Assembly: GCA_964035545.1 (NCBI GenBank)
Contig: OZ037771.1
Span: forward strand, 5,055,190-5,119,189
Direction: 5' to 3'
Length of the DNA stretch: 64,000 bases
Source: Bugula neritina
Taxonomy: Eukaryota; Animalia; Bryozoa
Shown: positions 6,735-63,700 of the stretch, in pieces
How positions within the stretch are numbered: position 1 is the stretch's first letter
How the letters are laid out: each line of letters begins with the position of its first letter
Notes under the pieces: generated by a model
What the model was told of the DNA's origin: nothing
The model's database searches: none
The model's input: only the letters and a program-made list of their open reading frames with translations
Made by a program: the position numbers and the translations under genes

Positions 6735-6746
6735 TTATTATAATAA

Positions 6747-7507: not shown

Positions 7508-7509
7508 TA

Positions 7510-19562: not shown

Positions 19563-22500
19563 ATGGCTACCAACTCTGTAACCAATTCTGAGGATGAAGT
19601 AACCGCAGCAGCTTCACAAACAGGTCCGTATACAATATTAGTTAGTCTGGAGAATGGTAAAATATTTATCTAAATACATTGTATGCACCTGAATATATCT
19701 GTACAGGTTTTAATTACATCTTCCAGTTTGATAGTTAATTTGAAGAACTTGTTATCCCTCTTCAAGTTTCTTCTCTGAACTATATTTTAACTATGGTGTT
19801 TCTGTACATTTTCTGTGACTTTTATCTGCATGTAGCTTAATGAAGCTGTTGATACATTTTTAGATCACATTAAAAACAGGTTTATTTCTAATTCTTGCCA
19901 TTTCCTATACTTGCTAGTATTTTCTTCTTATCAACATGTTGTATGTGAAATCTTAAATAGAAACATCAGCATTTTCTAATAGATAAGTTTCTCATTTGTT
20001 TTCAGTCTACCTAATATAAGTTGAAGAGATTCTCAGTTTTATTCCTATTAATCTTCATGTTGATGACTCAACTATTAGTATGTTTGTCTCTATGAATATA
20101 GGAATATGTTTACTGCTGGTTTATATTTTCAATTATTATATAAGTAATTCAACAGTAAAATGATGTAATTTATACTATTAGAATATTAACATAGATAATT
20201 GTACTATAAACCAGGTGATATTATATTTACTCTTTTATTAGGTACATATATACTAAAAATAGAACATTTGTTTTTAGCAGAGAAATACAGGTGTTGGTGG
20301 AGGCACTCTGGTATGGATTCTATTGATGTCAAAGACTTATTCTTAAAGCCTACAGAACTCTATACAACGGAGGAGATAAAGAAGCTCTGTTCAGGTCATG
20401 TGATCACTGACCTACTTATAGTGGGAGATCTGCCACCTGCTGTTACAGAGTTTGCTCCACTTGTGACTAACCTGTGTATTCAACATCTAACCAGTATCAA
20501 CAGTTTAGAATAGTAAGTCTATCATCACTTTGTTATCAACATGTTTAAGGTCACAATATCTCTATCCTCTAGAACATGACTTCTCTTTAGATAATAATAT
20601 ATACTTGAGCTGTGTATCTTGCTGTAGATTTTTCAGTTGTAACTCACTGACTATTTACTGAAATGTTGAAGTGTTTGGTGAGTTATACTTGTATGGCATG
20701 TCAGCAATATTCCTTCGTATTTCTACTGCACCTGAGTAGTCATTCTGTTCTCCTTGAGTTATAAAAGTGAGTGCAGTAAGAGTGGAATTTTGGAAAAGTC
20801 TGTGTGCTTGATGAGAAAAAGTGCAAACTAAATTATGTTCAACCAAACCCCTAAAAAGAAATTCATAAAAACCCGTAAAGAATTGAATTTGAAAAGTATA
20901 GAATTTTTTCCACTATTGCACTGAAATAGAATTATATTAGTTTGAGCTGAAGCTGCTGGGGAAGAGGTCAACAATGACTTCTGGTGACTCACACATCATA
21001 GCTGATTACTTGCATGTGGGGATAACTTTTAATTATTAATTCTGCCAGTAGAGAAATGGATAGCTAAATATTCATTAAGGAAATCACATATCAAGTATAA
21101 TATTACTTGCACAGCTTGTAGCCTTAGGTTTGTTTCCTATTCTTCAAAGTATTCACTGCTATTAGTTTTGTCTCCGTTTCTTCTAGTGTATTATCCGTGC
21201 TTCAGAAGTTGTTTGAGTTGCTAAAATTGTGAGATAAACTTCTATATTTTTTGATCAAATGAAATACGGAGTAAAACAATCAACTATATTTAATATGTTC
21301 TGAACACAGCTATAGTTTATATATACAGATGAGTAATAATCTAGAGTCACTCTGAAATAAGATCTCCCTTCCTACCTATCAGCATTATCTCAATTGTATA
21401 TCCAGCTTTTATAATCACTTTATACTTAGTCCAGGGTTGTGAATAATTTATTCTTATTATCTCAAAGTAGTTGTTGGACTTGTCATTACTCAGGCCTACC
21501 TGTTATTGCCTGCCTTACAGCTACTATCACACCTATGGCCAGTTTTATACTGCATCACAATTTACTTGCACCAGAGTCAAGTTAAGTGAATTGAAATTAC
21601 AGAGATTTATCTTCTCTTGTTTTGTCTCCAGTTTTTACTCTCCTTCTGTAATCAGTAATTCTCAGGTGGCTGCCTTGGCAGCAAAACCTGGTCATACGGA
21701 GTAAAACCCATCTTCAATATTCTCTTTACAGGAAAATTGTAGCAACTGCTTTTGATTTCGCAATTTGTTACAACTAAATCATCTAATCTATTAAAAAGCA
21801 TAGTCTTTTCATACTTACTTTGGTTTAATTGCTAATCTTGTATGTATTCTCTCTGTATTCTAATTATATGTATTATATGTATAATAGAACTGATACTAGT
21901 AGTCCCAGCATACCAACTCTTTAGTAATGAAATAAATTCATAAACACAAATAACTGTCACAATTCATACTTGCAGAGCAGAAATAATAGAAACTCACTGC
22001 ATGTTTAATATAATATTTCTACAACTTGTATAATTATAGTCATGGTATATTGTATGTATATTACAGTCTCTCCCAACTCACACATCTACACACATTAGAT
22101 GTGTCTGGTAATAAGTTAGGAACATTACCTGAGGTGATACCAAAGATGGAGTCACTTACAGAGTTACATCTACAGCGCTGTGACTTACATACATTACCAG
22201 ACAGGTGAGTTATATTAGTTATATGTGTTCTACTATTATGTAAACATATAATAAAGTGTAACAGAACTGATACTAGTAGTCTCAGCATACCAACTTTCTA
22301 GTAATAAAGTGAATATTATTCTCAAATGGAAAATTGTTTTAGCATTGATTTAGTAATTTGTTACACTAAATCATCTAATCTCTTAAAAAGGACTTTCTTC
22401 CCATATTTACTTTGGTCTAAACTCTAATCACTAAAGTTGTATGTATATTACATTCTCTCTGTGTTCTAATTCTATGTACATATATAATAGAGTATAACAG

Positions 22501-36242: not shown

Positions 36243-39200
36243 TGTTTATGCTATGTTTGCTTTATAGATTCAGAGACCGGTCAAAGAGTTTAAGATAGTT
36301 TATTGCTCAAGATATTAAAGGTCCACTCTGGATAGATCTAAAAGCACAAACTGACTATTATTAATAACACGAATAACATAGTATAAAGTATAAACCTTTA
36401 CAAACAAAGACAAAGCTTATTCAGCATATCATCAACATCCCCTTTACAAATCTTTGACAATGTTGAACAAACAAACGAAAAAAAACTAAACAAAAATTAA
36501 GAATTGATACATGAACAAGTAATACGATTTTGTTATTAATAGTCTATAGAAGATTAGCATATTATTACAAGATTGTCTCTCTTGTTAATTTAAAGTATAT
36601 TATATTATTTTCTGGGTTCGGGCTATTTAAATCTGTTTTTTTGTTTTTTGTTTTTTAAGAGTTTATTGTCCGATTGTCTTCGGTCAGATTAGGTATAATT
36701 ATCTAGTATAGTTCGTATTGTTCATATTTAGCTGGGGTTTTTGTTTGTCTTGACCGTTGCCATCTAACTGGGGCTGGATCAGGGTTTGTATTCACTTCTG
36801 TAGGAATTGCTGTTGCGGCTGATTGAATCTGTGCGTCTGGAACAGAATGACTGGAAACTGGGTCATTGGCGTCTGTTGGTATTTCAACTGTAGTCAATGG
36901 CTGACTAGCTTCCACATCACTCAGAGGGCGCAAATCGGCCCTGTTTCGCCTCACAGCCATGTCTGTGTCTTTGTTTGAGACAAGGTATGATCGGTCCGAC
37001 AGCTGTTCAACCACTCTACCCTGCTGCCATCTAGTCTTTTGTGACACAAAGTCTCTCAGCAGCACTGGCGAGCCAATAGCCAACTTTGTCAAATCTTTAG
37101 CTGATTTATTGTAGCTGCTCTGTACCACTTTTCTCTTGTTAGCTTTTTGCTGTAAGACATTGTTCTTTGGCATGTCACCTGTAGGAAGAATAGACCTCGT
37201 GGAATGCCCAAACATCCTCTGAGCTGGTGATGAGGTCATCCCTGCAGTCGGGGTATTTCGATACTCTAGCAGAGCCAAATATGGGTCTTCTGCTCTCTTC
37301 ATCAGCCTTTTGATTATTTTAACTGCTGCTTCTGCCTTCCAATTCGACTGCTGATGTCCCGGAGATGAGGTTGTATGGCTGAAACCCCATTCAGTGCTAA
37401 ATCGAGCAAAGTCGGCCGAGGTGAATTGTGGTCCATTGTCTGATTGAAGCTGGTGAGGGATCCCATACCTTGCGAAAGTTTTCTTGCAAGCCTTGATTAC
37501 TGCTCTAGATTGTGTATCAGATAGAGGTTCACATTCAAAGAAGTCAGAGTAATAATCTACCAGCATCAAATAATCCTTATGCTTATAGGTTAGTATGTCC
37601 ATGCCTACTTTACTCCAAGGTAAGTCTGGTATGTCATGGTTTTGCAGAGACTCATGCTGTTGTAAAGGTGCATCCATTGCACATGTGACACACTTGTCAG
37701 TTTTCATTCGAATGTCCTCAGCCATTTGAGGCCAGAATACCGCATTGCGAGCTCTTCTGATAGTGGCAGCTGTTCCTTGATGGCTAGTGTGAAGCTTGTT
37801 GAGTATCTCACCTCTGGCAGCTATGGGCACAACCAGTCTAGATCCTTTATAAATAATCCCATCTAGTACTGCAAGTTCATCTTTGTATGAATAGTACGGC
37901 TTCACCTCTTCTGGAAGTTGAAATAATTTGTTAGGCCATCCTGAGGTTATCAGAGATTGCAGCTGCACCATTACTGGATCATTACCCGTATGCTGTTGGA
38001 TCAGTTTATAGGTCGCTTCTGACACTGGCAGGTCTTGCTTCAGACCCGTTTCGCTTAGGTCAGACATAAATGACTTTAATTGATTAACTGTGAAAATCTG
38101 TTCTTCTGATGTATTGTTCTGGGGTTCACCAACAGGAGCGCGAGACAGCATGTCTGCTGTAACTTGTTCAGAACCAGGTTTGTAGTGCACTTTAATTTGG
38201 TATCTTTGCAGAGCTAATAGCATTGATTGCAGGCGTTTAGGCGCTTTGTTCAAAGGCTTCTTAAATATTGTTTCTAAAGGGTGGTGATCCGTGTGTACAG
38301 TTACATCTGGGTTTCCAAAAACGTACTGATCGTATTTCTGCATCCCATAGACGATGGCCAGAAGTTCTAGTTCAATAGGTGCGTAGTTTTTCTCACTATC
38401 TGTCAAACTTCTAGAGCCATAGCTTACTGGTTGCCCCTCTTGTAAAAGTACAGCTCCGAGCCCTTCTAGACTTGCATCAGTCTGTACAACTACTGACTGG
38501 TTCATGTTGAAGTATTTGAGTGAAGAAGTTTCCGTGATGAGTTTTTTAATCTCATCAAACGCTCTCTTTTGATCTTGGCCCCAGACAAACTCTTCCTTGC
38601 TTACACCAATCAGCCGTCTTAGTGGTTCACATTCAGCAGAGCAGTGAGGTATGAACTTTGATAGGTAGTTCACATGACCAAGAAACCTCTGTATTTCTTC
38701 ACTGTTGACAGGGGGCTTCATGTCCGTTATGGCTCGGATTTTATTAGGATCGGGCTTCACTCCATCTTTTGTTATCAAATGACCAATATAAGGTAGCTCT
38801 TCTAAAAGAAACTTACATTTTTCTTTGTTTAGCTTGAGATTAACCCTACGTGCTCTGGCTAAAAGTTTTTCGAGCTTTTGGTTATGGTCTTGCACTGCTT
38901 CCGCTTGAGTAGCTCCTTTCCCATAAATTAGGATGTCGTCTGCTACTACAGTTACTCCGTCGAGACCGCTAAGTGCATCTGAGAGTCTCCTCTGGAACTC
39001 TTCAGGACTTGAGGACAACCCAAAAGGCATCCTCAGCCATTTGTATTTGCCAAATGGCGTCCAGAACGTAGTTAAATCACTGGACTTTTTGCTGAGCTTT
39101 ATCTGCAGAAAGCCGTCCTTGGCATCACACAATGAGAATACTCGAGCACCATCCAGCTCGCTAAGCACATCGTCCAGCGTCGGCATTGGAAAATGATTTC

Positions 39201-40990
39201 TTTGAATCACTTGGTTTAGGTTGCTTGGGTCTAAACATACTCTCAGTGTGCCATTGGGTTTTTTCACAGCCACATGATTGTTTATCCAAGCTGTTGGATA
39301 GTCTACTGGACTTAAGATACCTTTCTGGGTGTATGACTGCAATTTTTGTTTGAGATCAGCTACCATCGAGAGAGGCGTCTTTCTGTTGTGACTTTGTCTT
39401 GGAATAGCCTTATCATCTATTTCAATATGGTATTCCCCAGGCAAACATCCAATACCTTCAAAAACCTCTGGGTAGCTTCCGAGAATGTCATCTAGGCTGG
39501 CATTGCTTATTAGGTTAACCCACTCCTCTTTAATGGTTATCAAACCGAGCTGAAGAGCGGCCTCACCAGATAGAAGGCTGTGATTTTGTGTCTTGTGCAC
39601 CAGAAAATACAGCTTCTCTCCAGCTACTTCCAGTTCGCATCCTCCTAATGCTCGAGTGATAGAACCCTCAAACTGCTTTAGTCTTGTCTGGTTGTTGTCA
39701 AGCTTTGGCTTACCGAGATCAACAAAATCTTTGTGATTGAGAATGTTACAGGATGCTCCTGTGTCAATCTGAAACTGTGTCGGTTTGTGACTATCATTCA
39801 CACTGGCTCTTATAGTTGTCATCAACTTTTTGTTCTTTCTGACTACCTGTATGCTCAACAACGATTCACTTGAGCCATCACTGTCTTCTTCTACCATGTT
39901 TACTTGCTTCTTTGAGCGACATTGAGATCTCCAATGGTTATACTTTTTGCAGTTATGACACTGGTGACCGTATGCAGGACACTTTCTGGGAGGGTGAGAC
40001 TGCCCACAGTTGCCACAACTTCCTTTTGAGAAGTTTCCTGTTCGAGTGGACCTTACTGCATTATCATCATCATCTTTGCTTGGCTTATTATGCTTCTTTC
40101 TGGAACCGATGAACTGCACTGATTCTTCAGACTGGATTGCAGCCATGTCATTCCTTGAATTCTCAGCAATACGACATTTCTTTATAGCTTCTTCTAGTCC
40201 TAAGCCAGTATCCCCGCTGGCATCATCAAATAGCTTCCTTCTTAGTTGGGCATCGTTGATGCCCAGGAGTAAAGCTTGAAGCATGAAATCGTCATACATT
40301 GTGTCCAGTTGACACTCTCGAGCGATTTTGTGAAGCGAGGTGACATATTCATCAATGTTCATGGTATTCTGCTTGGTTGATAACAGTTGATGTCTTTTTA
40401 CTACTTTATTAGTGCCTCGTTGACAAAAAGCATCAAACTTCTCCACAACATCAGCATAGACTTCTTTTGATTTACCATCTGAGAAAGTGAATGTTTTGAA
40501 TATGTCGTTGCCTCTTGGGCCTATGCATCTTAACATAATGGCTACTTTGACTTTATCATCAGAATTTGCTTTCTCAGCTGCTGTGAGGAATAGCTCAAAT
40601 TCTTCTTTAAATCTCATCCACTGGTTGGACAAGTCAGAGCCATCTTGAATAGGCTTGGGGGCTAAAAAGTCAACACTGATACTCATCTTGATATTGTGAT
40701 TTTTTGTTGTTTTTGATTTAGTTGTATTGTTTGTTGTCTCTCTTTCCAGCAAACACTTTACTTTTAGTTTCTTTAAGTCCTCACTCGGGGCACCATGTTT
40801 ATGCTATGTTTGCTTTATAGATTCAGAGACCGGTCAAAGAGTTTAAGATAGTTTATTGCTCAAGATATTAAAGGTCCACTCTGGATAGATCTAAAAGCAC
40901 AAACTGACTATTATTAATAACACGAATAACATAGTATAAAGTATAAACCTTTACAAACAAAGACAAAGCTTATTCAGCATATCATCAACA
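36243..40990 (-). mobile_element. Full-length Ty3/Gypsy (Mag-like) LTR retrotransposon
   Basis: 195-bp LTRs 36243-36437 and 40796-40990 (TG...CA, identical by eye); 5-bp TSD TCAAG; PBS TGGTGCCCCGAGTGAGG at 40795-40779; PPT at 36438-36447; empty site at 17822-17826. Confidence 0.97.
36703..40686 (-). CDS. Gag-Pol polyprotein (Gag Zn knuckles, protease, RT, RNase H, integrase)
   Basis: Single ORF with CGNC..H..C / CHNC..H..C, IDTGAS, RMPFGL, VADDIL, TDAS, HHCC, SDNGPQF; first ATG at 40686. Confidence 0.95.
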   Translation of the reverse strand: MSISVDFLAPKPIQDGSDLSNQWMRFKEEFELFLTAAEKANSDDKVKVAIMLRCIGPRGNDIFKTFTFSDGKSKEVYADVVEKFDAFCQRGTNKVVKRHQLLSTKQNTMNIDEYVTSLHKIARECQLDTMYDDFMLQALLLGINDAQLRRKLFDDASGDTGLGLEEAIKKCRIAENSRNDMAAIQSEESVQFIGSRKKHNKPSKDDDDNAVRSTRTGNFSKGSCGNCGQSHPPRKCPAYGHQCHNCKKYNHWRSQCRSKKQVNMVEEDSDGSSESLLSIQVVRKNKKLMTTIRASVNDSHKPTQFQIDTGASCNILNHKDFVDLGKPKLDNNQTRLKQFEGSITRALGGCELEVAGEKLYFLVHKTQNHSLLSGEAALQLGLITIKEEWVNLISNASLDDILGSYPEVFEGIGCLPGEYHIEIDDKAIPRQSHNRKTPLSMVADLKQKLQSYTQKGILSPVDYPTAWINNHVAVKKPNGTLRVCLDPSNLNQVIQRNHFPMPTLDDVLSELDGARVFSLCDAKDGFLQIKLSKKSSDLTTFWTPFGKYKWLRMPFGLSSSPEEFQRRLSDALSGLDGVTVVADDILIYGKGATQAEAVQDHNQKLEKLLARARRVNLKLNKEKCKFLLEELPYIGHLITKDGVKPDPNKIRAITDMKPPVNSEEIQRFLGHVNYLSKFIPHCSAECEPLRRLIGVSKEEFVWGQDQKRAFDEIKKLITETSSLKYFNMNQSVVVQTDASLEGLGAVLLQEGQPVSYGSRSLTDSEKNYAPIELELLAIVYGMQKYDQYVFGNPDVTVHTDHHPLETIFKKPLNKAPKRLQSMLLALQRYQIKVHYKPGSEQVTADMLSRAPVGEPQNNTSEEQIFTVNQLKSFMSDLSETGLKQDLPVSEATYKLIQQHTGNDPVMVQLQSLITSGWPNKLFQLPEEVKPYYSYKDELAVLDGIIYKGSRLVVPIAARGEILNKLHTSHQGTAATIRRARNAVFWPQMAEDIRMKTDKCVTCAMDAPLQQHESLQNHDIPDLPWSKVGMDILTYKHKDYLMLVDYYSDFFECEPLSDTQSRAVIKACKKTFARYGIPHQLQSDNGPQFTSADFARFSTEWGFSHTTSSPGHQQSNWKAEAAVKIIKRLMKRAEDPYLALLEYRNTPTAGMTSSPAQRMFGHSTRSILPTGDMPKNNVLQQKANKRKVVQSSYNKSAKDLTKLAIGSPVLLRDFVSQKTRWQQGRVVEQLSDRSYLVSNKDTDMAVRRNRADLRPLSDVEASQPLTTVEIPTDANDPVSSHSVPDAQIQSAATAIPTEVNTNPDPAPVRWQRSRQTKTPAKYEQYELY

Positions 40991-44513: not shown

Positions 44514-47500
44514 ATGGCTACCAACTCTGTAACCAGTTCTGAGGATGAAGTAACAACAGCAACTTCACAAACAGGTCCGTATACAATATTAGTTGGTCTG
44601 GAGAATGGTAAAATACACACCTGAATAGAGTATTCTTTAAATATACCTGAATAGGTTTCAATTAAATCTTCCAGCTTGAAAGTTAAAATAAAGACTTTGT
44701 TATCTCCCTTTAAGTTTCTTCTCTGAACTACATTTATACTATGGTATTTCTGTATACACCATAACTTTCTGTAACTTTTATCTGCATGTAGTTTAATGAA
44801 GCTGTTGATAAATTTTTGGATCACATTAAAAACAGGTTTATTTTTAATTCTTGCCATTTCTTATACTTGCTAGTATTTTCTTATCAACATGTTGTATGTG
44901 GAATCTTAAATAGAAGTATCACTGTTGTCTAATAAATAAGTTACTCATTTTGTTTCAGTCTACCTGATATAAAAAGTTGAAGAAATTCTCAGTTTTATTC
45001 CTATTAATCTTCATGTTGATGACTCAACAATTAGTATGTTTGTCTCTTTGAATATAGGAATATGTTTACTGCTGGATTACATTTTTAATTATTATATAAG
45101 TAATTCAACAGTAAAATGATGTATTTTATACTATTAGAATATTAACATAGATAAATGTACTATAAACCAGGTGATATTATATTTACTCTATTATTGGGTA
45201 CATATATACTAAAAATAGAACATTTGTTATTAGCAGAGAGATACAGGTGTTGGTGGAGGCACTCTGGTATGGATCCTATGGATGTCAAAGAGTTGTTCCG
45301 CCAATCTGCAGAACTCTATACAAAGGAGGAAATAAAGAAGCTCTGTTCAGGTCATGTGATCACTGACCTAAAGATAGTGGGAGATCTGCCACCTGCTGTT
45401 ACAGAGTTTGCTCCACTTGTGACTAACCTGTGTATTCAACAGCTAACCAGTATCAACAGTTTAGAATAGTAAGTCTATCATCACTTTGTTATCAACATGG
45501 TAAAGGTCACAATATCTCTATCCTCTAGAACATGACTTCTCTTTGGATAATAATATATACTTGAGTTGTGTATTTAGCTGTCAGTATTTCAGTTGTAACT
45601 CAATGACTATTTACTGAAATGTTGAAGTGTTTGGTGAGTTATACTTGTATGGCATGTCAGCAATATTCCTTCATACCTCTACTGCACCTGAGTAGTCATT
45701 CTGTTCCCCTTGAATTGTAAAAGTGAGTGCAGTATATATTAGGAAATTTGGAAAAGTCTGTACACTTGATGAGAAAAAGTGCAAACTAAATTATGTTCAA
45801 CCAAACCCCTAAAAAGAAATTTATAAAAACTGGTAAAGAATTGAATTTGAAAAGTATAGAATTATTGCACTTGAATGGAATTATATTAGTTTGAGCTGAA
45901 GCTGTTGGGGAAGAGGTCAACAATGACTTCTGGTGACTCACACATCATAGCTGATTACCTGCATGTGGGGATAACTTTTAATATTTATTCTGCCAGTAGA
46001 GAAATATATAGTAGATGGATATCTTGAGCCATCTTAAATTGAGGAATCATTTTTATAGTGAAGTCACTTGCTCAGCTTTTAACCTCGTAGTGTTTCACAT
46101 TCTTCAATTTGTCTATGCTTATTAGGTCTGCCTGTGTGTCTATAGTCAGAGACTTATAATAGAAACTCTAGAATCACTCTGAAGTAATATTTAGATTCAA
46201 TTGTACCTCCAGATTATCTAATAATACTTTTTATGCTTAGCCTAGGGCCACACTGTGCGTATTTTCGCATGCGAAAATTGAAATCACAAGTAGCAAAGGT
46301 GTCCACTGTGCGCGTTGAGAAAACATTCGCACTTGTCGCTCTGCATTTTCAACGCAAGTGCGAATCATCTCTGTCGTCGTCACCTAATTGGCTGGTAGTT
46401 ATTCAGCGAGCCCAATTTCTTTATTTTAGCGCTACATTCCAGTAAATTGCGTTTTATTGAAAGCGAGTGCGATTTAAAAATGAATGCTTTATTTATCACG
46501 AACCACTGACGCTTAGTCCAGAATTGTGAACATTTTATTCTCATTATTTCAGAGTATTTGCTGGATATTTTATTAGTTATCTGCTATTTGGTTTTAAGCT
46601 ACTATCACACCTATGACCAGTTTTTAATGTATCATAATTTACCTGCAGTCTATCATAATTTATCTGCAGTTCAGTTTAAGTGAATTGGAAACTACAGAGA
46701 TTTATCTACTCTTGTCTCTAGTTTTTCTCTACTTCTGTAATCAGTACTTCTTACGGTCACCACTCATACAGAGTAAAAACCATTTTCGCTATTCTTTTCA
46801 CAAGAAAATTATTACAAATGTTTTTGATTTAGCAATTTCTTACAACTAAATGGTTTAATCTCTTAAAAATAATGTTCTCATATTTACTTTGGTCTAATTG
46901 ACAATTTTGTATGTATATTACATTCCCTCTGTGTTCTACTATTATGTAAACATATAATAAAGTGTAATAAACTGATAATAGTAGTCCCAGCATACCAACT
47001 CTCTAGTAATACGGTGAATATAGTTCTTAAATGCACAAAATAATAACAATATAACCTCAAAGTATGTTTAACATGATATTCCTGTAACTTTTATATTTAC
47101 AGTCATGGTTTATTGTATGTATATTACAGTCTCTCTCAACTCACACATCTACACACATTACATGTGTCTCGTAATAAGTTAGGAACATTACCTGAGGTGA
47201 TACCAAAGATGAAGTCACTTACAGAGTTACATCTAGAGGACTGTGACTTACATACATTACCAGACAGGTGAGATATATTAGTTATATATGTTTTACTATT
47301 ATTTAAACATATGATAAAGTATAATAGAATTATTACCAGTAGTCTCAGCATACCAATTCTCTAGTAATAAAGTGAATATAATTCTCAAATGCAAATAACT
47401 TACCCAATTCATACTTACAAGGCAATAATAATTTAGATTCACTGCATACCTGCCATATAATATTCCTGTAACTTGTAAAATTATGGTCATGGTATATTGT

Positions 47501-50500
47501 ATGTATATTACAGTCTCTCCCAACTCACACATCTACACACATTAAATGTTTCTGAGAATAAGTTAGGAACATTACCTGAGGTGATACCAAAGATGGAGTC
47601 ACTTACAGAGTTATGTCTATGGGGCTGTGACTTACATACATTACCAGACAGGTGAGTTATAATAGTTACATATGTCTACTATTATATAAACATATGATAG
47701 AGTAGAATAGAAGTGATACTAGTATTTCCAGCATACCAACTCTCCAGTAATAAAGTTGATACAATTCATCAACAAACCTCTCACCTTTTTAGCCTAGACC
47801 ATCCTCATTTCTTGTTGGATTATATTGCATGTTTCAATTTGTCAGATTCTGCATATCCATTATACCATTGATTCTTATGCATTGGAGTTGAAGCTAATAT
47901 CATCATCTTTGCTGCAAACATCGCAATACCACTGCAGACGTTTTCCCTCATGTTTATAGACATTCATTTCACCCCAACCTGTTATCTAATCACATCATTT
48001 TCCTTATGCTCCTCATAAATTATCCTAAAGATGTGTCTCGACATTCTCATTTATGCTGTCACCATTCTGATGGATTATAGTCACAATTTCATTCTATTAA
48101 TATCCAATAATTGTCTTTTTCTTGTTTGGCCAACTTGTATCTAGGTATATATAGGTTCTTATAGGTATATAAGTGTATAGGTTCTTTGCTTCGATCTCTT
48201 GTAGGTATTCATAGACTGTCTCATATGCCTTCTCTTTGGCTGTTGCAATTTTATTTGTCGTCTGTGTTTTCTTCTCTCCGTATACTTTCTCTGTGATCTT
48301 TCCCTTCTCTTCATCGTCACTACACCTAGAGGTTTTCCATCTTTTGAATACTTTTTACTTTCCATTACAAACTACAGGATGTATATTTATATATTTGCCA
48401 CATGTTGAAACTGCCTATTCTCTTTTGGCTATTCTTACTGCACACAATTAACTGGCAATCCATACTTACAAAGCAACAATAAAATACTCACTGGGTGTTT
48501 AACATAGCATTCCTGTAACTTGTATAATTATAGTCATGGTTTGTTGTATGTATATTACAGTCTCTCCCAACTCACACATCTACACACATTAGATGTGTCT
48601 GGTAATAAGTTAGGAACATTACCTGAGGTGATACTAAAGATGGAGTCACTTACAGAGTTATCTCTACTTGGCTGTGACTTACATACATTACCAGACAGGT
48701 GAGATATATTAGTTATATATGTTCTACTATTATGTAAACATATAATAAAGTATAACAGAACAAATACTAGTAGGCTCAGCATACCAACTCTCTAGTGATA
48801 ATATAGATATAATTCTTAAAAGCAAATAATGTACCCAATTCATACTAACAAGGTAATAATAATTTAGATTCACTGCATATCTGCCATATAATATTCCTGT
48901 AACTTGTATAACTATAGTCATGGTATATTGTATGTATATTACAGTCTCTCTCAACTCACACATCTACACACTTTAGATGTGCCTCTTAATAAGTTAGGAA
49001 CATTACCTGAGGTGATACCAAAGATGGAGTCACTTACACAGTTACATCTAAGCAACTGTGACTTGCATACATTACCTGACAGGTGAGATATATTAGTTAT
49101 ATATTGTCTACTATCATGTAAATATATAATAAAGTATAACAGAAGTGATACTAGTAGTCCCAGCATATCAACTCTCCAGTAATAAAGTGAATATAATACC
49201 TAAATACAAATAACTTACCCAATTTATATTACAAGGCAATAATAATTTAGACTCACTGCATATCTACCATATAATATTCCTGTAACTTGTATAATTATAG
49301 TCATGGTATATTGTATGTATATTACAGTCTCTCTCAACTCACACATCTACACACATTAGATGTGTCTCGTAATAAGTTAGGAACATTACCTGAGGTGATA
49401 CCAAAAATGGAGTCACTTACACAGTTAAGTCTAGAGGACTGTCACTTACATACATTACCAGACAGGTGAGTTATATTAGTTATATATGTTCTACTATTAT
49501 GTAAATATATACATGTAAGATATCATATATGATCATCTATTTTATATAAACTATAGAGATTACTAAGTTTGAATAAATCTGATTGCAGCTTGCAATATAT
49601 TATACAGTCACGAGTAAAAGTTTTGACTCCCCCAAATTGTTTACCGGTTTACATCTTTATTTGCAATTTCTGAATATTTGAATATGTATATAATGGAACT
49701 GATTGGCTGAGCTACAACTCTAGATAATTTTCAACTGTATAACACGAGGTTATTGATAGAAAAGTGCTAAAAAGCCCTCTACCATCAATTTTTGCACCGA
49801 AACATATTTATGTGGGATTTGAAATTTTTTCTGTATTTGGTTAGCAAAATTAAAATTGTATAATGAGAGATTTTTGTGCGTGAAAAGTTTTTGCACATAA
49901 CATGTCAGTGTTTCGGTGTGAGTGAGTAACTATTATCACCAATGACTGCCAGGCAGTAGGCTGACATATTCTCCACTAGCACAGCTGACTTTGTGGTTTA
50001 TCTCACATCCTGTACCTGCATTGATGACAGTTCAAGCTAAATTGACCATGTCAGTTGGTTTTATCTCAGCTACTTTTCTTTGTATTGTCTGTAATTTTTT
50101 TTAACCTTTGCATGGGCCACTAAAGTACTTGAACTTTCTCTCTTTTACTAGGAAAGTATGGTAGAAAGTAAATTTTTTATACTTTCTCTAAAGTTGCTTT
50201 TTTCTGCATAATCTCTACAAAGCTGGCAGCATGAATTTATCTTTCAGAAATTTTTATTTTACTAGATATTTCCATAGTAGTAAGTTTCATAAGCCAATTA
50301 TAAGTATGAAATCACCAATGTCATGACATTCCAAAAGTCACTCCCCAGTTTCCTGTAATGCTGCAAAACCAAACCCAATTACTTCTTTCTGCTAGTACTT
50401 TTTAGTTTGATGACTGCTGTCTGCTAAAATTTTGTCTTCTACCACTCAACATAACGGAGTGAAGTTTCAGTTTAGAGAAATAGTAGAATTGCGAGGTATA

Positions 50501-53500
50501 TTATGTCATTACTGCTTACTCAGTCTGTAGTACAGTTTCATTTTAAGTTGCACAATGTTTGTTCCCACGTTGAAACTTTTGTAAATATTTATTCACAATA
50601 CACTATTTTGCCTTGAATGTACAATGGTGTGGAGGCAAAAATTAATCTAAATAGGTGAAAAACACTTGAAAATTTACTTCAGCTTGCGAGCTCCTTAGAG
50701 CAAATGTAGTTTATCTATTTAAAATTATTTAAATATGTTTAGTTAAATTAGTAGACAACATACAAGACCAAATGCAACATTTTGGCATTTCTTTAAATTT
50801 TTTGAAATATCAAGAGATTGAAAGTCCTGTTTAGCCGTATATCAAAGCTGCAAAAAGTACATGGGGGTGTCAAAACTTTTACGTATGGCTGTAATAATTT
50901 TGCAATAATACACTTTGCATATGTTGCAATTGTATTATAGTAGATCCAAAGTTTTGAGATGTAATAAAATTTTCTAGTTATAAATCTATACTCGATGTTT
51001 TCACTGTAATGGCTGTACTGTGAATTCAAACAATCATCATAGTCTATATTTTCAGTTTGGACTGTGTTCTAGTCATTTGCAACAGTTTATCTCCCAGACT
51101 ATGTTAGATGCTTAACTATCATACATTCAATCAAGTTTTACTTTTAGGCATGATACATTTGATATAGAATAATACTAAAGTTATATTATATACTTACTTG
51201 GTAGTGTTGGTCAACTCAAGAATCTCCGATACCTGGACTTGACAAACAACTCTGAGATGACATCTTTAACTCCTCAACTTCTCAACATGCCTAATCTGAC
51301 TAAACTGTACTGCTTCAAGTGTGAATCACTCACATCCCCGCCTTATGCTGTGTGTGTAGACAGACTACCAGCTATCAGACAGTATTATAAAGATCTTAGG
51401 TCTGGTGGTCATGTAAAGGTTTCTGAAGCTACGGTCGCTCTAGTGGGTAGATCGTTATCGGGGAAAACCAGCCTAGCAAAAACGCTGGTGGGATCAGATG
51501 GCAAAAGGGAATTAACCAATAGAGCGGCTGATGCAGTGGAAGATGAAACAACTCGTGTCTTCAATATGGAAAAGTTAGTGGTTGGTGACAATGTTCTTCA
51601 GTTCATAGATTTTGGTGGTAATGAAATCTACCAATTTACCTACCAGTTCACTTTGAAACAGAACTGTATTCCTATTGTGGTTGTGAATCTAAAAGAGTTT
51701 GAACAACTCTATTTCGAGATGAATGGTAATGAAGCAGTTCGATGCACATATTTTGATTGGCTCTCACATCTGTACCTGGCCAATCCTAGACTCAGAGCAC
51801 CCAAACTGGTTTTCACTCACCGAGATGCTTACAGTGCAGATGGATTTGAAGAGCTAAAAAGGCTGTTCTTTTTCCACACCAAAAGTGTATTCAATTTGAT
51901 ACAACTAGAAGAAAATTCTCAAAAGAATTATCTTCGTTCTTTCACAGGAATTTCTCATTTTCAGTGCCAAGAGCTGTTTCAAGAACAAGATATATATGTT
52001 GTGGGTGATGAATATGAAGAGGTGTTTGATCAGCTGAGAAGTCATATCATATCTGACAGTAAACTAGTCGTGAAGAAGGTGCCTACTCTGTGGAGAAAAG
52101 TTGCTCAAACATTCAACTCCTTCCATGGGAGTTACAAGACATTTCCAGAAGTGCTTCAACATGTCATTGAATGCAAGTTGGCAAATGAAGACCAGCTGAG
52201 AGTGATTCTCTCGTACATGCATAACAGCGGCCATCTCATTTGGTACCAGAATAGGGAGAGTTTGCAGTCTCTGGTATTCTATGACATCTCTGTGGTTACA
52301 AAGCTGCTCCACGTATTCTTCACTCACGAGAAGGAAGTGTGGAGCAATCGACGGTCAGCGGTTGAAGCGGATTCACTTGACAATCCGTTGATAGAAAATG
52401 AAACAGAGTTTAACAATTTGGCTCAAGAGTTTGTTCAAACTGGCAGGATGAGCGAGAAGCTGTTTCAGCATCTTCTGATAGCAGAGACCAGCTTCACCAC
52501 GAGTGACAAGATGAAGGTGGCAGTCGCATTGCTACAATCTTTCCAGTTGTTATTCGAGATGAAGGATTCATCCCAGAGACTAAGTTACACTATGCCGTAC
52601 TTCTCACAGGAGTATTTCAGCGACTTGACCGCCTCCAGGAGACAACCTGTAAAACTGTCAGTAGACATGTTGTTTGGTGGCTTGACTCCCCCTCAGTACG
52701 TCTACCACCAGATTTCTGTGAAGCTTCTCAATGATATCCAGGATTGTAGTGAAAAAGCTGTGAGAAAGAATGGAGTGGAGCTGAGAGACGATGCTTACAC
52801 CCTGCAGTTGCTGCATGACTACAAATCTCGTAAACTCACTATATCGGTAACGTCTGCTTGTCGGCAGATAGGCAATGCTTGGAAGATGTTGACCACTTCA
52901 GTTCATTCAACCGTAAAGTACGTCAACTCCACATGGAGAGCAAGTAAAATCACCTTCATCAATTTGTGTGCTCACTGCCCATTAGTTGGAGAAAAGCGAC
53001 CAAAGAGGTTCATCAACCCACCCTGGTGTCGACCTCCAAAGGATGGTGAATCCCTTCCCATGACTTCACATTCATCACCTGGTAGATGTGGAACATACAG
53101 AGATGTCCCAGCTTGTCTCTTACACCCAAGTTAGTATGATTATCTTCTCGTAGGTTATTTATAGGATATTCAAATGATGATGTACTGTCCAAGTAATAGC
53201 AACCTTCATAATTCGCACTTATATTGCAGCTTTCCAGCTTTCTGGAGATGAGCTGCAGAAACTGAGTGACTTTGTGAAGACCAACTTCAAGCCACCAGGT
53301 ATCTTGAGTTAAACTTACTTCTTGTGAACTGATTAAAGATAACTTTCTTCCTTTCTGATTCTCCATCTTTGTTAAATTTACAGTTGAAGTTGTTCCTGCA
53401 GGTTGTTGGTTTCATTACATTTCTGTGAGCTGTTTATGTGATGTTTCCTGTACATGTAGATAATATTGGACACAGTGGAGCTGCTACTCATACTGTTGGT

Positions 53501-56500
53501 ACTGATGATGTACTGAGTGATGTTTCGGATGAAGAAGAAGGTTCTACCTCCACTTCAGAAGATCTTACCAAGTTGACACTAGTTCCTACTACTAATCAGA
53601 GTATCAAGTCTCTCTTCATCAACACTTCAAAGGTTTGTAAGTCATGTTGAATATTCTGTAGCCTTGGCTCTCCTCTCTGCTATCTCTGTATAGCCTTGGC
53701 TCTCCTCTCTATTATCTCTGTATAGCCTTGGCTCTCTTCTCTGTTATCTCTGTATAGCCTTGGCTTTCCTCTCTGTTATCTCCATATAGCCTTGGCTCTC
53801 CTCTCTGTTATCTCCATATAGCCTTGGCTCTCCTCTCTGCTATCTCTGTATAGCATTGGCTCTCCTCTCTGTTATCTTTGTATAGCCTTGGCTCTCCTCT
53901 CTGTTATCTCTGTATAGCCTTGGCTCTCCTCTCTATTGTCTCTGTATAGCCTTGGCTCTTCTTTCCACTCTTATCTGGTCAACTACTTACCAGCTGTCTT
54001 AATTGCAAAAATATGTCACCTTATTTCTAGCACTATATATTAACAACTTTACTGTGATTTTGAAATAACCTTCTTTTAACAGTCTTGTGATTGATTTACC
54101 CCTCATTCACGCTTACTGTACCGTCAGCCATAGCGAAAAATATCAGCCATTTTTAATGTGTCCGGGCTGAAGCTTTCAAAGTTCGCTATTAGGTATGGTT
54201 TATGACACTTCATTGGACAATTATATCCAATGCGTTGACGCAAAAGTTTTTCTGTCCAATAGAAGTGCGCACAAGATTTTTGAATTAAGCAGTGCTTCAT
54301 TGTGATTGATTACGTACCGCAACGCCATACAAGAAATTTAGACATTTGTAAAAATGGCTGATATTTGCTGTTATAGCCTACGGTGCGTTAAGTGTGAATG
54401 ATGGGTTGCTATTCTATGGAACAAACTGCTAGGTTATACTTTATATTTTCCCAGTACTGTTTGGGCTAGCAGAAGCCACACAATATGTCAGAACCCATAT
54501 TAGTCTACTCATGGATGATTTTTAACTCTTCAGTTGCTTATAATATAACATGAGCAGGTCAGTTGTGTTCTATTCAGTATTATATTCTCTATATAGAATA
54601 TACTGAGTAAGTACTAAACTAATTACATAGTCTGTATCTACAGATATACAAGATGACGAGTCCATTCAGAGGAAGAGCTCTGATTATAAACAACAACAAG
54701 TATAGAAATGGAGGAGAGAGACTTGGCTCTAATTATGATGTTGACAACACATTTGCTCTGTTCAGGAAGATGGGATTTGAGGTTGTGAAGCAGAAGGATC
54801 TCACAGCTGAGGTATATTTCTATTTAATTGTAGTTGTCTCCCTCTTTCTATCACGTAGTGTGACTAGTTATTAGTGGTCAATGTTTCACTTCAATGTTAT
54901 AATAGCCTGCAGACTTATCCATTGAATCAGTTAATAAGTTTGGGAAATACAAACTCTTAACTTTTGGGCTAACTTTTGTTTCACGGAGCTAACTTCCTAA
55001 AGGCTAGTATGAGACCTGACAAATATTCTCTCACATTGAGTTTGTATACTGTGTGTGTTGTGTTATATTCATATACAGGGGATACTTCAGTGTATTCAAT
55101 CAGAGACAAGAGATGAGATTCATAACACTTATGGTATGTTCTTCCTGTTTCTGTTTGCACACGGAGCTAATGGAATGATTCATGGAATTGACTCACAGCC
55201 AGTCTATCTAACACAGATCTACAATCTCATTAACTCTACAAATTTTCCCAACATGGCCGGCAAGCCTAAAGTTGTGGTTATTCAGGCGTGCAGAGTTGGT
55301 GAGTGTAGATATGATACGAGTAAGAATATATTATACTATTGTAATACTGTATTATATGATACTCTAGTCTTCATACATATACATAGAATACTGGTTGGTA
55401 TATCACATGTGTTACTAATCAATCAGGTAACTCAGTCAGTCAAACTGAGCAGAATATTCAACAGAGTACCAACTCCTCCTCACCAGAACTTTCTGCTCTC
55501 AGAACTCATCAACAGGAAGCTGAGACTTCAACTGGACAGAGGAACTTTGATGTTGACGACCTTCTAATCCTTCATTCCTGCTTTGAAAGTAAGAATTTTG
55601 TCCACCGATAGAAACGAATATTTTTTGCATTATTTTAAGATTGACATAATTTTGTTGAGAAAATCAACTCAAAATATTATCATCCAAAATTTTCTTACGG
55701 CAAATCTGCTATTCAATTGAAAATTAATAACAAATAGAATAAAAAGTGCAGGTAGCAGCTGTGCTGTGCTGTCTAATCACATGACCTTTCATAAACCTGA
55801 ACTGAGTACATAGACTATTTGTGTGTGAGTTACAGTTATCTAGTTTTCATGTAATCTGTGATACACTAGTCTGTACAGTTTATACTCTGCTGCCCTAAAA
55901 ATGCCCTGCTAAGTTTTTTTCCAGCTGAATGTTTTTAATTTAAAGTGAGACTGTTAAGTTACCAAACAATTCTGTGTGGTTATTCTCTATACACCTAAAT
56001 CATGGGCCACAACTCCCAATCGCCGTCAAGTAGTTGTGAAACCCACCAGTCATGTCACTTTCTCAAGATATACCTTTCGTTGCTGAAACAACACAATTTA
56101 CAAATTTTCAATTTGCAATTCTCATTAGTTTTTACTGGATAGCGTCACTCACTGTTACTATACACTGTATAATATTTACCTTTTAACTCATTGTATTATT
56201 TTAATAGACAGTGCATCTATGAAGTTTGATTACGGTGGGTCATTATTGATAAGAACACTTGTCAGGACTTTACACAGACATGGCTGTCATCGTGATCTTG
56301 CTGACTTATTTGATATTGTGAGTAACTTCCTGTGACATCATTTCCTATTTAGAAGAGGCTGTTTCCATATTAGCCAGTGTGGTGTAGTCACAGTAGTATA
56401 GTTCTAGTGACTAGACATAGTATAGTCATAGTATAATATAGTCATAGTGTAGTGAATTTTGCCAGTTCACTATTATTATTTGTGGGTCTACTTAATCAAA

Positions 56501-58669: not shown

Positions 58670-59880
58670 GAACAGTTCTACTAAATATATTCATAGCAAA
58701 TCCAACCACCCACCAAGCATAATCTCCAACCTACCCTTGTCTGTTAACAAATGACTGTCGTCAATATCATCTAATGAAAAAATTTTCACACAATCCACCT
58801 ACAACCACCAAAACCTCTTAAACCAAAGTGGCTATAAACACCAACTACAATTCCTACCAAGAACACAAACAGACAACACACAACAGAAATCCCGAAAAAG
58901 AAAAGTTGTTTGGTACAATCCACCATACAGCCAACATGTAACCACAAAAATTGCAAAAAACTTCTTTAAAATCATGATAGAGGAATTTCCGAAACAACAC
59001 CCACTCTATAAAATAATCAACAAAAACAATATAAAAGTTAGCTACAGCTGCATGCCAAACATAAAACAGACCATAAATGCCCACAATAACAGAATTTTAG
59101 AGAAACAGAAGCAACAAAAAACTGCAACTGCAGAGAAAAAGAAAGTTGTCCACTGAAAGGAAACTGTCAGGAGAGCAGAGTAATATACCAAGCAACTGTA
59201 GAAACCGCCGAAAACGAACCTGCAACATACATTGGCCTAAGTGAAGGACCGTTTGAACAAAGATACGCAAACCACAAATCATCATTCAAAAACAAGGAAA
59301 AAGCAAATCAAACAGAACTTAGCAAATACATTTGGCAACTAACTAGCAAAAACATCAAACATAATTTAAGTTGGAAAATATTAAGGAAAGCGAAACCATA
59401 CAACACAATTACCAAAAGGTGTAATTTATGCCTATGGGAAAGTTTCTTTATTTTATACAAACCCAACATGTTTATTTTAATTAAGCAAAACGAACTTTTA
59501 TCAACCTGCCGACACTCAAAAAAATTCTTACTGTGCAACCACAAAACCTAGAAACTCTGTAGCCTATTTTCATTTTATGTACTATAGTAAATAATATCCA
59601 AATACCTATACAGTATAATCACCCAACAACAACTTCATGCATCTGCTATAAATTGTGTTTTTACATTGTGTGTTTATTTTATATTATATTTAATTACACT
59701 TACAAACCTATATAACAACAAAGCCACTGCTATGTTTGCGTTACGTTCTACGTTATGTTTAGCATGTTGATTTTCTTAATGTAAAAATTTAAATTCACCA
59801 ATATTGTGCCTGAGGAGTGCGGAAGAGGCATGAAATTATTAGTAGCGCAATAAAACATCTAACTAAATTGCTTTTTTCTT

Positions 59881-59885
<5 letters not shown>
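58670..59885 (+). mobile_element. 5'-truncated, degenerate Penelope-like retroelement (Naiad-like), RT thumb + GIY-YIG endonuclease
   Basis: SNHPPSI, WYNPPYS, VSYSCMPN, CNC..CPLKGNC, VIYQA..YIGLSE, RYANH, ELSKYIW, CNLC, CRH; stops and frameshifts present; followed by a hammerhead motif and (TA)n. Confidence 0.88.
59802..59852 (+). ncRNA. Minimal type I hammerhead ribozyme
   Basis: Stem I TATTGTGC/GCGCAATA; core CTGAGGA; stem II GTGC-GGAAGAG-GCAT; GAAA; very short stem III; GTA cleavage triplet at 59842-59844. Confidence 0.7.
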
Positions 59886-59965
<80 letters not shown>

Positions 59966-59989
59966 GTTTACATATATATATTATATACG

Positions 59990-60064
<75 letters not shown>

Positions 60065-60093
60065 ATATATATGTATGTATATATATATGTATG

Positions 60094-60125
<32 letters not shown>

Positions 60126-60193
60126 CGTATATAATATATATAAAAACGTATATATATATATATACAAAGGTTTACATATATATATTATATACG

Positions 60194-60274
<81 letters not shown>

Positions 60275-60278
60275 GTAT
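59885..60278. repeat. (TA)n microsatellite
   Basis: Directly visible. Confidence 0.97.
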
Positions 60279-60748
60279 AACAATTTGTCCAGATATTTAG
60301 ATAAAAATGCTTTAAAGGTTTGTATAAAAGTGCATAGTTAGACCGAAGGTGTGCTTTTAACATAAGTGTTCAAAATCTTTATAGAAGTAGAAAAGGTTGT
60401 TATAATATATGAAGAAAATAAGCCGCCTTTAGTATACCATAGTGTATAGTACTTATATATACTTACATTATTTTACACATTTTGCTATACTAGTATATAT
60501 GTACATATTGTATTTATATCCAAGACCAGGTGTTAGCATGCTCGTTTACGGTAATAGTTATTATTCCATAATTTATCATACAATCTGTTTTATTTAGTTT
60601 ATTAGAAAAAATTGAAAATTTCCAAACAATGCAAACTCATACAGGTGAACATAAAAGCACATGTTAGGCTAAATAAGTAACACTATTTATTTAAATGTTT
60701 TGGTGTTTATTTACATTTGCTACACTTTTGTTATAGTTTTCATAGCAC

Positions 60749-63700
60749 CTGGAACTCTCGCTTCGTCTTCGTGTTAGTAGGTTCAAGATATTTTCTTCCA
60801 AAATAATTAGAAGTAGAAACCATCTGAACCCAAGGGCTAAATTTTAACTTGTCATGGTGACTTTTGACTACCAACTTTAAGCTTCTTCTACTTTGATTTC
60901 TTTCCTGCTGAACAAAAGCAAAACATATTTAAAACTGAGCCCATAAAGCACTAAAATTATGAACTATCTAAGTCATGTCAACAAAGAAGCTAAAGATCGC
61001 TCATCTTTGACTATATTTTTGCAATACAATTAATTAAATAATAGCATTTGACAATTTGAAAAGTTGTATGCATATTATGTTTGTGTCCTATACTGTGCTT
61101 TTAGAAGAATATTTTTTTTACAAATTATTAAAGACAAAAGCCTAAACAATATTTTGTATTATAGTTTTTTTAGGCCCTTGAAATCTACTACTTTAATTAA
61201 TGTTCACATTCAGAAAAACAGCTGATCAATATGCAACTTTAACACCATAACTGATGATTATTAAAATATTAGTTTTAATGCATAGAGATATCTCTTTAAA
61301 ATCTGTGTAAACTAAATTTTGATTCATAGATTTGTGCTCTTTTTTAAATAACAATTATTAATGCAAAAATTTCATACTGTCTTTTAGCATCTGGATATAT
61401 ATTTGAGTTGTTGATGCACTTCAGATAGGGCAGTCTTATAGTTAAGCTTATATCTGATAACATGGTATTCACAAGCCATAAAAAGTGAAAATTTTACAAA
61501 CCTTATTCGTAGAAACTGGAATTGATCCACGACTTTCTAAATCTTTCAAACTTTCTGAACTTTTTAAATCTTCTAAGCTTTTTAAACCTTTTAATTTTTT
61601 TAAACTTTCGAAACTTTTTAAACCATCTGGACTTTGTAAACTTTCAAAACTTTTTAAACTATCTGGACTTTTGAAACTTTCTAAATTCTCTAATTCTTCT
61701 AACTCTTTTAAGCTTTCTAACTTTTCTAGACTTTCTAAACTTGCAGGTGAAGAAAGGAGCCTGAAAAACAATTATAATAATACTCAGTTTAGCTTTGCTA
61801 ATCGTTAACGTTTCAGTTATACAGAGGCTTTATCAAATGCTGACAAACAATTTTTTAGTTTTAAATCTCTATTCTATCTAAATATAGATTCAAATCATGA
61901 GAGAACATAAATCTTATTTTGTTTAGGCAATATGATATGGGCAAATAGTTGGACTTACGTTTTTCTACAGTTCACAAGCAAAGTTATCAGGGAGCTGCAT
62001 GAGAAACTAATATTATATTGAAACACAAAATCTAGCATTTAATGTTTGACATATCTTAAATGAAAGTAAACTTAGGGCATACAGTTACTCCACCCTTTCC
62101 TTAATACATATAATTCTATGGCTAAGCAAAGCTACAGTGGATTAAGCATAAAGGCCCTACTGTTTTTACTAAATGTGTTGGAGCATTCACTAACTCATTT
62201 GCGTTAAAGTAGGCATTAATTAAAATCAGTTTCGCTAATGTGCTTGCCCTTTAAACGTGTGCTGATCAAGCTCAGCTAATAGTTCTAGACATGGTGCATT
62301 AACAACTAAGATTTCAGTTGCCAAGGCTGTTAGCATTATCCATCTACTGATCTGGCACACAGAGCTTATATTCTCCTTATATTCATGTTTATGTTAAAAT
62401 AGTTTTGAAGCCTTCCAACTGCATCCATTAATATATACATTACAGACAGCTGAGGTTTTACAGAGACGGTACCACAATATAAGGTAAGTACTTACCTAGT
62501 ATACTATATACTGCACTTACTTAGTATACTATATACTGTACTTAGTATACTATATACTGTACTTACTTAATATACTATATACTGTACTTACTTAGTATAC
62601 TATATACTGTACTTAGTATACTATATACTGTACTTACTTAATATACTATATACTGTACTTACTTAGTATACTATATACGGTATGTACTTAGTATACTATA
62701 TACTGTACTTAGTATATTATATACTGCACTTACTTAGTATACTATATACTGTACTTAGTATACTATATACTGTACTTACTTAATATACTATATACTGTAC
62801 TTACTTAGTATACTATATACGGTACTTACTTAGTATACTATATACTGTACTTATACTTAGTATACTATATACTGTACTTAGTGTACTATATACTGTACTT
62901 ACTTAGTATATTATATACTGTACTTACTTAGTATACTATATACTGTACTTAGTATACTATATACTGTACTTACTTAGTATATTATATACTGTACTTACTT
63001 AGTATACTATATACTGCATGTACTTAGTATACTATATACTGTACTTACTTAGTATACTATATACTGTACTTACTTAGTACACTATATACTGTACTTACTT
63101 AGTATACTATATACTGTACTTACTTAGTACACTATATACTGTACTTAGTATATTATATACTGTAATTACTTAGTATACCATATACTGTACTTAGTATACT
63201 ATATATACTGTACTTACTGGTTAAAAAATATTTCATGGCCAAAAATATCTGTTACATTAATATCAACTATGCTTTCTCTACTTTGAGCTTCTGCAAGGTG
63301 TTTTATTGGTGGCTCTAGGTTCATTGTAGTTAATTGGTGCTTGTTCACTGTTTTGATTGGCAAAGGCTGTAAGTAAAAAATATATATATCAAGCTTTTCT
63401 ACATAAATTCCAATTATTGTGACTGTAAGTCAAATAAAAGCAACAGAGAGTATTTAGTAGCTAATTGGCCTACCTCAATTATGATTCACTCTGTAGAATA
63501 ACTAATTTTAAATACAAAGGTTCGTTCTTATGTTACTGTTATTTCAATATTGTATTGGCAAAGCTATTTATTATTCTGAAAACTAATAATAGGTTAAATC
63601 TGGTTTGGTATACACATACAAAATCTGTAATGCTCTTGAGCGTCTCCTCACTTTCATCCTGATTCAAGAACATCATTTCGTAATTCCTGTTACCTTTCTT

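Follow-up and report, generated by a model that had tools for sequence, protein, structure and literature searches.

A tandem family of predicted ROCO-caspase genes in the bryozoan Bugula neritina with exon cassettes hypervariable at leucine-rich repeat surface positions

In the brown algae Ectocarpus and Saccharina, the LRR-ROCO genes encode one leucine-rich repeat (LRR) per 72-nt exon, these exons are shuffled and alternatively spliced, sites on the repeats' concave face are positively selected, and the proteins have been proposed as immune receptors (PMC3341825, PMC11378527). A comparable arrangement occurs in a 64,000-nt stretch of the bryozoan Bugula neritina (contig OZ037771.1; hereafter the window), where repeated 138-nt LRR exons, termed cassettes, precede an exon for LRRs, a Roc GTPase and a COR domain, and further exons for a caspase. 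The brown-algal system is the closest analogue, and the Bugula family works alike without being a member of it. Shared are the LRR-Roc-COR core, frame-preserving repeated LRR exons in variable number, an arrangement in tandem clusters that include pseudogenes, and positively selected concave-face residues; in contrast, the Bugula exons hold two LRRs with phase 2-2 in 138 nt instead of one LRR in 72 nt, the organism is an animal and not a stramenopile, a caspase is fused at the C-terminus, and the cassette frameworks are almost identical. The two cassette systems look convergent, with no evidence of common descent. Our preferred reading, to which a probability of about three in four is assigned, is that the Bugula genes form a young tandem family whose germline cassettes are under diversifying selection on the concave LRR face of a ROCO-caspase receptor.

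The window lies on a 15.8-Mb contig, consists of AT-rich eukaryotic DNA, and holds three tandem copies of one gene (18–23 kb each). A 31-nt core motif of the cassette exon was matched eight times on the + strand (zero matches expected by chance), each time inside a 138-nt exon flanked by ttacag upstream and gtgag downstream, and all eight possess the AG acceptor and GT donor. The exon comprises the third base of a split codon (AG/T, Ser), 45 full codons, and 2 bases, with introns of phase 2 on both sides (phase 2-2, the codon being split after its second base), and its peptide consists of two 23-residue LRRs in which the N/C position of LxxLxLxxN/C is N in the first and C in the second. Three cassettes belong to copy 2 (22067–22204, 25063–25200, and 26256–26393) and five to copy 3 (47130–47267, 47514–47651, 48561–48698, 48945–49082, and, as the last, 49328–49465), all on the + strand and read from the sequence, with splice contigs in addition for the second and fifth cassettes of copy 3 and splice joints, given below, for the first and fourth. 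The intron before the third cassette of copy 3 measures 909 nt compared to the usual ~246 nt.

An earlier note on this DNA had described eight such exons, and their coordinates and splice sites were confirmed; the residue sets that it listed at the x positions match exactly, and all eight peptides are distinct. The concentration of the variation that it reported also held (13 of the 18 hot-codon nucleotides vary compared to 12 of the 120 others, Fisher p = 5e-8; the hot codons are defined below), as did the near-identity of the exons (mean pairwise identity 91.9% overall and 97.1% without the six hot codons). Its statement that the exons are almost identical even at synonymous sites held with a refinement: the proportion of synonymous differences (pS) in the framework is low (0.07), and this is near the level of the rest of the gene family. 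Among the paralogues, the Roc-COR exon has a pS of 0.11 and a proportion of nonsynonymous differences (pN) of 0.045, the former indicating that the paralogues are young, and with cassette pS this close to the value of a young family, the low synonymous divergence needs no special explanation.

Genome-wide searches over the 216-Mb assembly recovered 40 cassettes, all on the same contig, in each of two independent searches, and these 40 provided the alignment for the site counts. All are open and possess GT and AG splice sites, and all 40 peptides are distinct. Variation was concentrated at codons 11, 14, 32, 34, 36, and 37 (the hot codons), where 6, 9, 4, 7, 10, and 13 residues occurred, respectively, and was weaker at codon 16; 19 columns were invariant. 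The six-residue hot signatures numbered 38 among the 40 cassettes. With 40 cassettes instead of eight, the variability was still confined to the x positions of LxxLxLxxN/C. Based on Nei-Gojobori counts, the six hot codons had a pN of 0.437 and a pS of 0.100 (ratio 4.35), while the other 39 codons had a pN of 0.022 and a pS of 0.070 (ratio 0.31).

Diversifying selection at the hot codons, which the earlier note had proposed, is supported by three analyses, with nonsynonymous change 4- to 10-fold over synonymous change at the x positions and omega ≤ 1 rejected by the first and the third. A tree-free minimum, taken as the number of residue states minus one and therefore not inflatable by recombination, gave at least 43 nonsynonymous changes over 15 sites versus at least 23 synonymous changes over 31 sites (binomial p = 5e-8). 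With a tree computed from the unit after removal of the hot codons, parsimony gave 18–41 nonsynonymous changes per hot codon, compared to about 4 expected at the synonymous rate (p < 1e-6 at codons 11, 14, 34, 36, and 37; p = 0.08 at codon 32). A codon site model written for this analysis (GY94 type, F3x4, fixed topology, scaled branch lengths, omega grid fitted by expectation-maximisation) favoured classes with omega > 1 on each of two trees (2dlnL 431 and 442), with P(omega>1) > 0.98 at codons 11, 14, 16, 32, 34, 36, and 37. Flanking introns were dropped as the neutral yardstick in favour of synonymous sites, because insertions and position-specific neighbours make them too noisy (p-distance 0.01–0.6); in the cassette pair with the closest flanking introns (3.8% different), the hot codons nonetheless differ at ~6 of 15 nonsynonymous sites. 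Purifying selection, by contrast, acts on the framework, Roc-COR, and caspase.

In the repeat consensus, the hot codons correspond to x5 and x8 of repeat 1 and x3, x5, x7, and x8 of repeat 2, with x10 as the weaker site. The cassette aligns over its full length to solved LRR proteins (phmmer; Leptospira LIC11098, E 2e-32; SHOC2, E 2e-18), and a model of a single cassette (predicted local distance difference test [pLDDT] 62, low confidence) placed strands at residues 9–13 and 32–36, compared with strands at 9–11 and 33–35 of the two LRRs in the model of the Roc exon. The hot residues thus fall in or just after predicted beta-strands, in accordance with the concave-face position expected beforehand. 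In LRR solenoids, the x residues face solvent on the concave sheet, and this geometry together with the predicted strands implies that the hot residues do the same here.

The hypervariability extends beyond the cassette exons, which differs from the earlier reading. The first 40 codons of the Roc exon, which encode two LRRs, had a pN of 0.141 and a pS of 0.064 and vary at the same x positions, as does the LRR-like end of exon 1; over the remainder of the Roc exon, omega was 0.15–0.6. With x-position variation also present in LRRs outside the cassettes, the pattern follows protein position and not exon type or DNA context. Hot-site pN was 0.38–0.50 whether positional orthologues, same-gene neighbours, or cassettes of the other genomic cluster were compared, the sites being effectively saturated, and the states at different hot sites are statistically independent.

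Several observations weigh against the preferred reading. The size of omega is unreliable (the grid limit was reached at three sites, the trees rest on a weak 138 nt, and recombination is unmodelled), the Roc exon is interrupted by an in-frame stop in two of the subfamily's nine genes, and the expression evidence is drawn from Logan contigs, mapped on 45260–51259, whose RNA label was guessed. In addition, framework pS is uniform, at 0.04–0.07 for positional orthologues and for same-gene, other-gene, and other-cluster cassettes alike, and lies below that of the Roc exon (0.11) and of an orthologous intron (0.16), such that some homogenisation or synonymous constraint may inflate the pN/pS ratio. 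These values, along with the lack of association among hot sites, are what would be seen if the diversity were old and held by balancing selection while the framework was homogenised by gene conversion, low pS then reflecting homogenisation and not youth. That account is considered improbable. The hot codons 32, 34, and 36–37 are interleaved with the invariant codons 33 and 35, and because hot and invariant codons alternate, homogenisation cannot create the pattern; a conversion tract cannot skip interleaved codons without selection, so even this account would still amount to diversifying selection. Furthermore, the same pattern occurs in LRRs that are not part of cassettes, namely those of the single-copy Roc exon.

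Expression and splicing are shown in the Logan contigs, in which depth was concentrated on exons with little on introns, and was high over exon 1 in run X1. Exact GT..AG joints were found at 47267>47514 in two studies (runs X1 and X11) and at 49082>49328 (run X11), and a further joint led from a cassette donor into 51205, the start of the Roc exon. It is also conceivable, though a long shot, that the symmetric cassettes are used combinatorially, through exon skipping or choice, or are even altered somatically, and so provide a lophotrochozoan with an anticipatory-like receptor repertoire across cells, zooids, and colonies. The tool assigned the joint into 51205 to the donor at 48698, which might reflect skipping of the final two cassettes, but it is supported by 25 nt only and cassette ends are almost identical over 25 nt, so the cassette or paralogue of origin is ambiguous. 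Contigs differed from the genome within cassettes at codons 14, 28, 32, and 36, as would result if sister cassettes or alleles were cross-mapped. In runs X3 and X4, one contig each tracks a cassette (47140–47270; 5 mismatches in 131 nt) and continues, in frame, with the Roc exon's LRR cap (…LPD-R-CESLTSPPYAV) without the two non-cassette LRRs, and could represent a paralogue, an allele, or an alternative acceptor. Within intron 1, the stretch 46060–46660 was, in all four runs, covered 50–1000x as deeply as the adjacent exons, many contigs terminating at about 46237–46240 and at 46309, which suggests a highly repeated or highly expressed element; an Rfam search of this stretch returned nothing.

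A process that writes the variation directly, as a mutational hotspot, by randomisation of NNY codons in the manner of a diversity-generating retroelement, or by somatic diversification, is very improbable. Its appeal is that the variation lies nearly all at codon positions 1–2 (in NNT, NNC, and NNG codons), a layout such as a diversity-generating retroelement yields from AAY codons, and that a reverse-transcriptase element is located between copies 2 and 3. However, pS is similar inside and outside the hot codons (0.10 and 0.07), and such ordinary synonymous divergence argues against local hypermutation. The changes split 78/71/16 over the three codon positions, with the third at 10%, near the 13–20% expected for nonsynonymous change, and synonymous third-position transitions are not in excess. 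At positions 1–2 of the hot codons, transversions numbered 84 versus 65 transitions, compared to 27 versus 55 in the rest of the exon. None of the 40 cassettes has AAN at all hot codons, as a template-like cassette would; the reverse transcriptase is part of an ordinary Ty3/Gypsy gag-pol open reading frame (ORF); and the differences are fixed in a germline assembly, with unique exons varying at the same positions. The specific idea of NNY randomisation was mostly rejected, given the missing template cassette, the ordinary reverse transcriptase, and counts that fit selection.

Just as improbable is neutral drift at unconstrained x positions. Solvent-exposed LRR positions do accept most residues, but relaxed constraint is at odds with the 4–10x excess of nonsynonymous over synonymous change at the hot codons, and change there tops intron divergence even for pairs whose flanking introns are <4% different. 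Although tandem near-identical units are difficult to assemble, an assembly or mapping artefact is next to inconceivable, as the 40 copies differ by codon-specific substitutions and not indels, each within its own diverged introns, an independent Bugula neritina assembly has proteins 91–96% identical, and the cassette contigs and splice joints occur in independent runs.

Searches and folding were performed exon by exon, on single-exon products. The putative first coding exon of copy 3 (45269–45466, + strand; 66 codons, read directly from the ATG to the donor TA/GTAAGT) encodes a hydrophilic N-terminus with no obvious signal peptide and ends in an LRR-like cap. Its donor phase fits the first cassette, to which we infer, from the sequence, that it is spliced. 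Each of the nine subfamily genes has a homologue of exon 1 upstream of its first cassette, and that of copy 2 is located at 20313–20507 (+ strand; tblastn, 85% identity). In copy 3, a 1.7-kb intron separates the last cassette from the large exon (51205–53131, + strand; the acceptor is at 51205 and the 3′ end, from tblastn, is approximate), which encodes, in order, two LRRs, a C-terminal LRR cap, the Roc GTPase, COR-A, and COR-B (Pfam). The corresponding exons are at 28190–30116 in copy 2 (+ strand; tblastn, 92% identity, conserved acceptor) and at 9435–11349 in copy 1 (+ strand), the five cassettes of which lie ~21 kb upstream, outside the window (locus L032).

The LRRs are of the 23-residue bacterial/SHOC2-like class, with a Pfam LRR_1 match of 24.7 bits (cut-off 20.6), and Roc scored 28.0 bits (cut-off 27), its P-loop, DxxG, and T/NKxD-type motifs being readable in the ORF as GRSLSGKTS, DFGG, and THRD. 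COR-A (31.3 bits) and COR-B (21.7 bits) were both under their Pfam cut-offs. An AlphaFold model of the large exon (pLDDT 72; predicted template modelling score 0.69) had its best Foldseek matches in the LRR-Roc-COR structure of CtRoco from Chlorobium tepidum (6hlu, E 2e-18), LRRK1, and LRRK2, and the structural matches, including the RocCOR structure 3dpu, span about 570–680 columns. These matches confirm the ROCO fold, with COR directly after Roc, in spite of the sub-threshold COR scores. Pfam matches for the switch were of the Roc, COR, and MMR_HSR1 type only, with no STAND (NACHT/NB-ARC) domain on the gene. Judged by language-model features, MFHAS1-like ROCO clusters (ESM Atlas) are the closest to the Roc-COR part.

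The caspase region of copy 3 (54641–56332, + strand) is spread over several exons recovered with Pfam Peptidase_C14 and tblastn of Bugula models, with approximate borders of 54641–54829, 55076–55330, 55423–55608, and part of 56129–56332; the last is caspase-like by eye only, with no Pfam match on 56129–56332. Peptidase_C14 was matched at E 2e-9 and 2e-12, above the cut-off. All nine paralogues retain intact AHG (His) and QACR (Cys) motifs with hardly any variation, and from its sequence the caspase domain is apparently complete. The best database proteins were two truncated hypothetical proteins of Bugula neritina (91–96% identity), both without cassettes, while an exhaustive protein search with one cassette as the query returned only generic multi-LRR proteins (≤49% identity), indicating that no annotated protein carries these cassettes. 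Between the exons for the COR-linker and the caspase lies a 32-nt tandem repeat (53659–53959; 9.4 copies, 92% matches) that is present in all three copies (also 30573–30945 and 11838–12082) with differing copy number, and 16-nt arrays are located farther downstream (33000 and 57100).

Within the assembly, the 40 cassettes form two clusters. Cluster 1 (5.039–5.105 Mb, + strand) contains 13 cassettes in three genes (5, 3, and 5), and cluster 2 (7.589–7.726 Mb, − strand) contains 27 cassettes in six genes (4, 6, 6, 2, 5, and 4). Adjacent cassettes share second-repeat residues (KD in two neighbours and ECC in two others), and this sharing, together with a tandem period of 384 bp, points to ongoing duplication of exon-plus-intron units. 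The two stops mentioned above are a single TGA and a single TAA in Roc-COR exons of the second cluster (L042:2087-3976 and L036:6547-8430, − strand) in genes whose cassettes are intact, and these genes are likely young pseudogenes or contain sequencing errors. Beyond the subfamily, at least 70 related Roc-COR exons were scored among 131 candidates (36–67% identity), mostly in large clusters on another contig. A distant relative on a JGI metagenome contig (sample 3300002729; L051:5076-7830) shares this design: four double-LRR exons, spaced ~800 bp from each other and varying at the same x positions, are accompanied by a Roc exon and caspase exons, which indicates that the cassette design predates the studied subfamily.

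Under the preferred reading, each gene would encode a cytosolic one-chain protein with an N-terminal cap, 2–6 double-LRR cassettes, two further LRRs, the Roc GTPase, COR, and a caspase. New cassettes would arise through unequal exchange of the ~384-bp exon-plus-intron unit, the phase 2-2 symmetry preserving the reading frame during cassette gain, and new genes through whole-gene tandem duplication with occasional decay. Repeated positive selection would then replace the exposed concave residues x3, x5, x7, x8, and x10 of LxxLxLxxN/C. ROCO proteins are GTP-regulated monomer-dimer switches (PMC5714945, PMC11052575). Binding of variable ligands by the LRR surface may shift the nucleotide state or oligomerisation of Roc-COR and bring the fused caspases together, and their activation would lead to cell death or signalling. 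The protein would be a one-piece counterpart of the NLR-caspase pathway with a role in immunity, symbiont control, or allorecognition. The earlier note had proposed pathogen recognition, but symbionts, viruses or mobile elements, and allogeneic tissue are just as possible as the putative ligand.

Other known systems share parts of this design. Animal ROCO proteins of the MFHAS1/MASL1 and LRRK type have the same LRR-Roc-COR order, but they are conserved, occur as single copies, and have either a kinase or no effector, whereas the Bugula family combines a caspase effector with hypervariable LRRs and comprises at least 70 related Roc-COR exons. The NLRs of animal inflammasomes and of plants likewise combine an intracellular LRR sensor, an NTPase switch, and a death effector, and are clustered, subject to birth-and-death evolution, and positively selected at xxLxLxx positions; however, the Bugula switch is a Ras-like Roc GTPase with COR and not a STAND NACHT/NB-ARC domain, and the caspase sits in the same chain instead of being recruited. 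The VLRs of lampreys and hagfish have a hypervariable concave LRR surface that also derives from many near-identical cassettes, but in VLRs the cassettes serve as unspliced donors and are copied into one gene somatically, whereas those of Bugula are normal exons spliced in series, and VLRs are secreted or GPI (glycosylphosphatidylinositol)-anchored, whereas the Bugula N-terminus is hydrophilic. A literature search, with subscription journals mostly outside its coverage, returned no paper on bryozoan ROCO, LRR, or caspase receptors, and none on a ROCO-caspase architecture. To our knowledge, hardly any gene-level work exists on immunity or self/non-self recognition in bryozoans.

An LRR sensor joined to a Roc-COR switch and a covalently fused caspase would represent a third design of animal intracellular receptor, beside NLR and TLR, and with exon-cassette diversification much as in brown algae it would make a clear case of convergent receptor design. 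The hot-site pattern supplies a short list of candidate specificity residues. Bugula neritina is host to a bryostatin-producing symbiont and its settlement is kin-related, so candidate ligands are experimentally approachable.

Mobile elements and repeats occur around the three genes. A Ty3/Gypsy-type long terminal repeat retrotransposon between copies 2 and 3 has an unbroken gag-pol ORF of 1349 codons (36703–40752, − strand) that encodes RVT_1, RNase H, and integrase zinc and core domains. The ~21 kb between the five cassettes and the Roc exon of copy 1 (L033:1500-9200; window 1–9400) is full of ORFs, including double-jelly-roll capsid-like, endonuclease VII-like, and rve integrase with chromodomain and PLA2-like domain, which in sequence looks like a Polinton/Maverick-like or mixed mobile-element insertion. 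Downstream of copy 3 are long simple arrays of the TA/TATA type with 8-nt units, and 25-nt tandem arrays (59800–60330 and 62420–63250).

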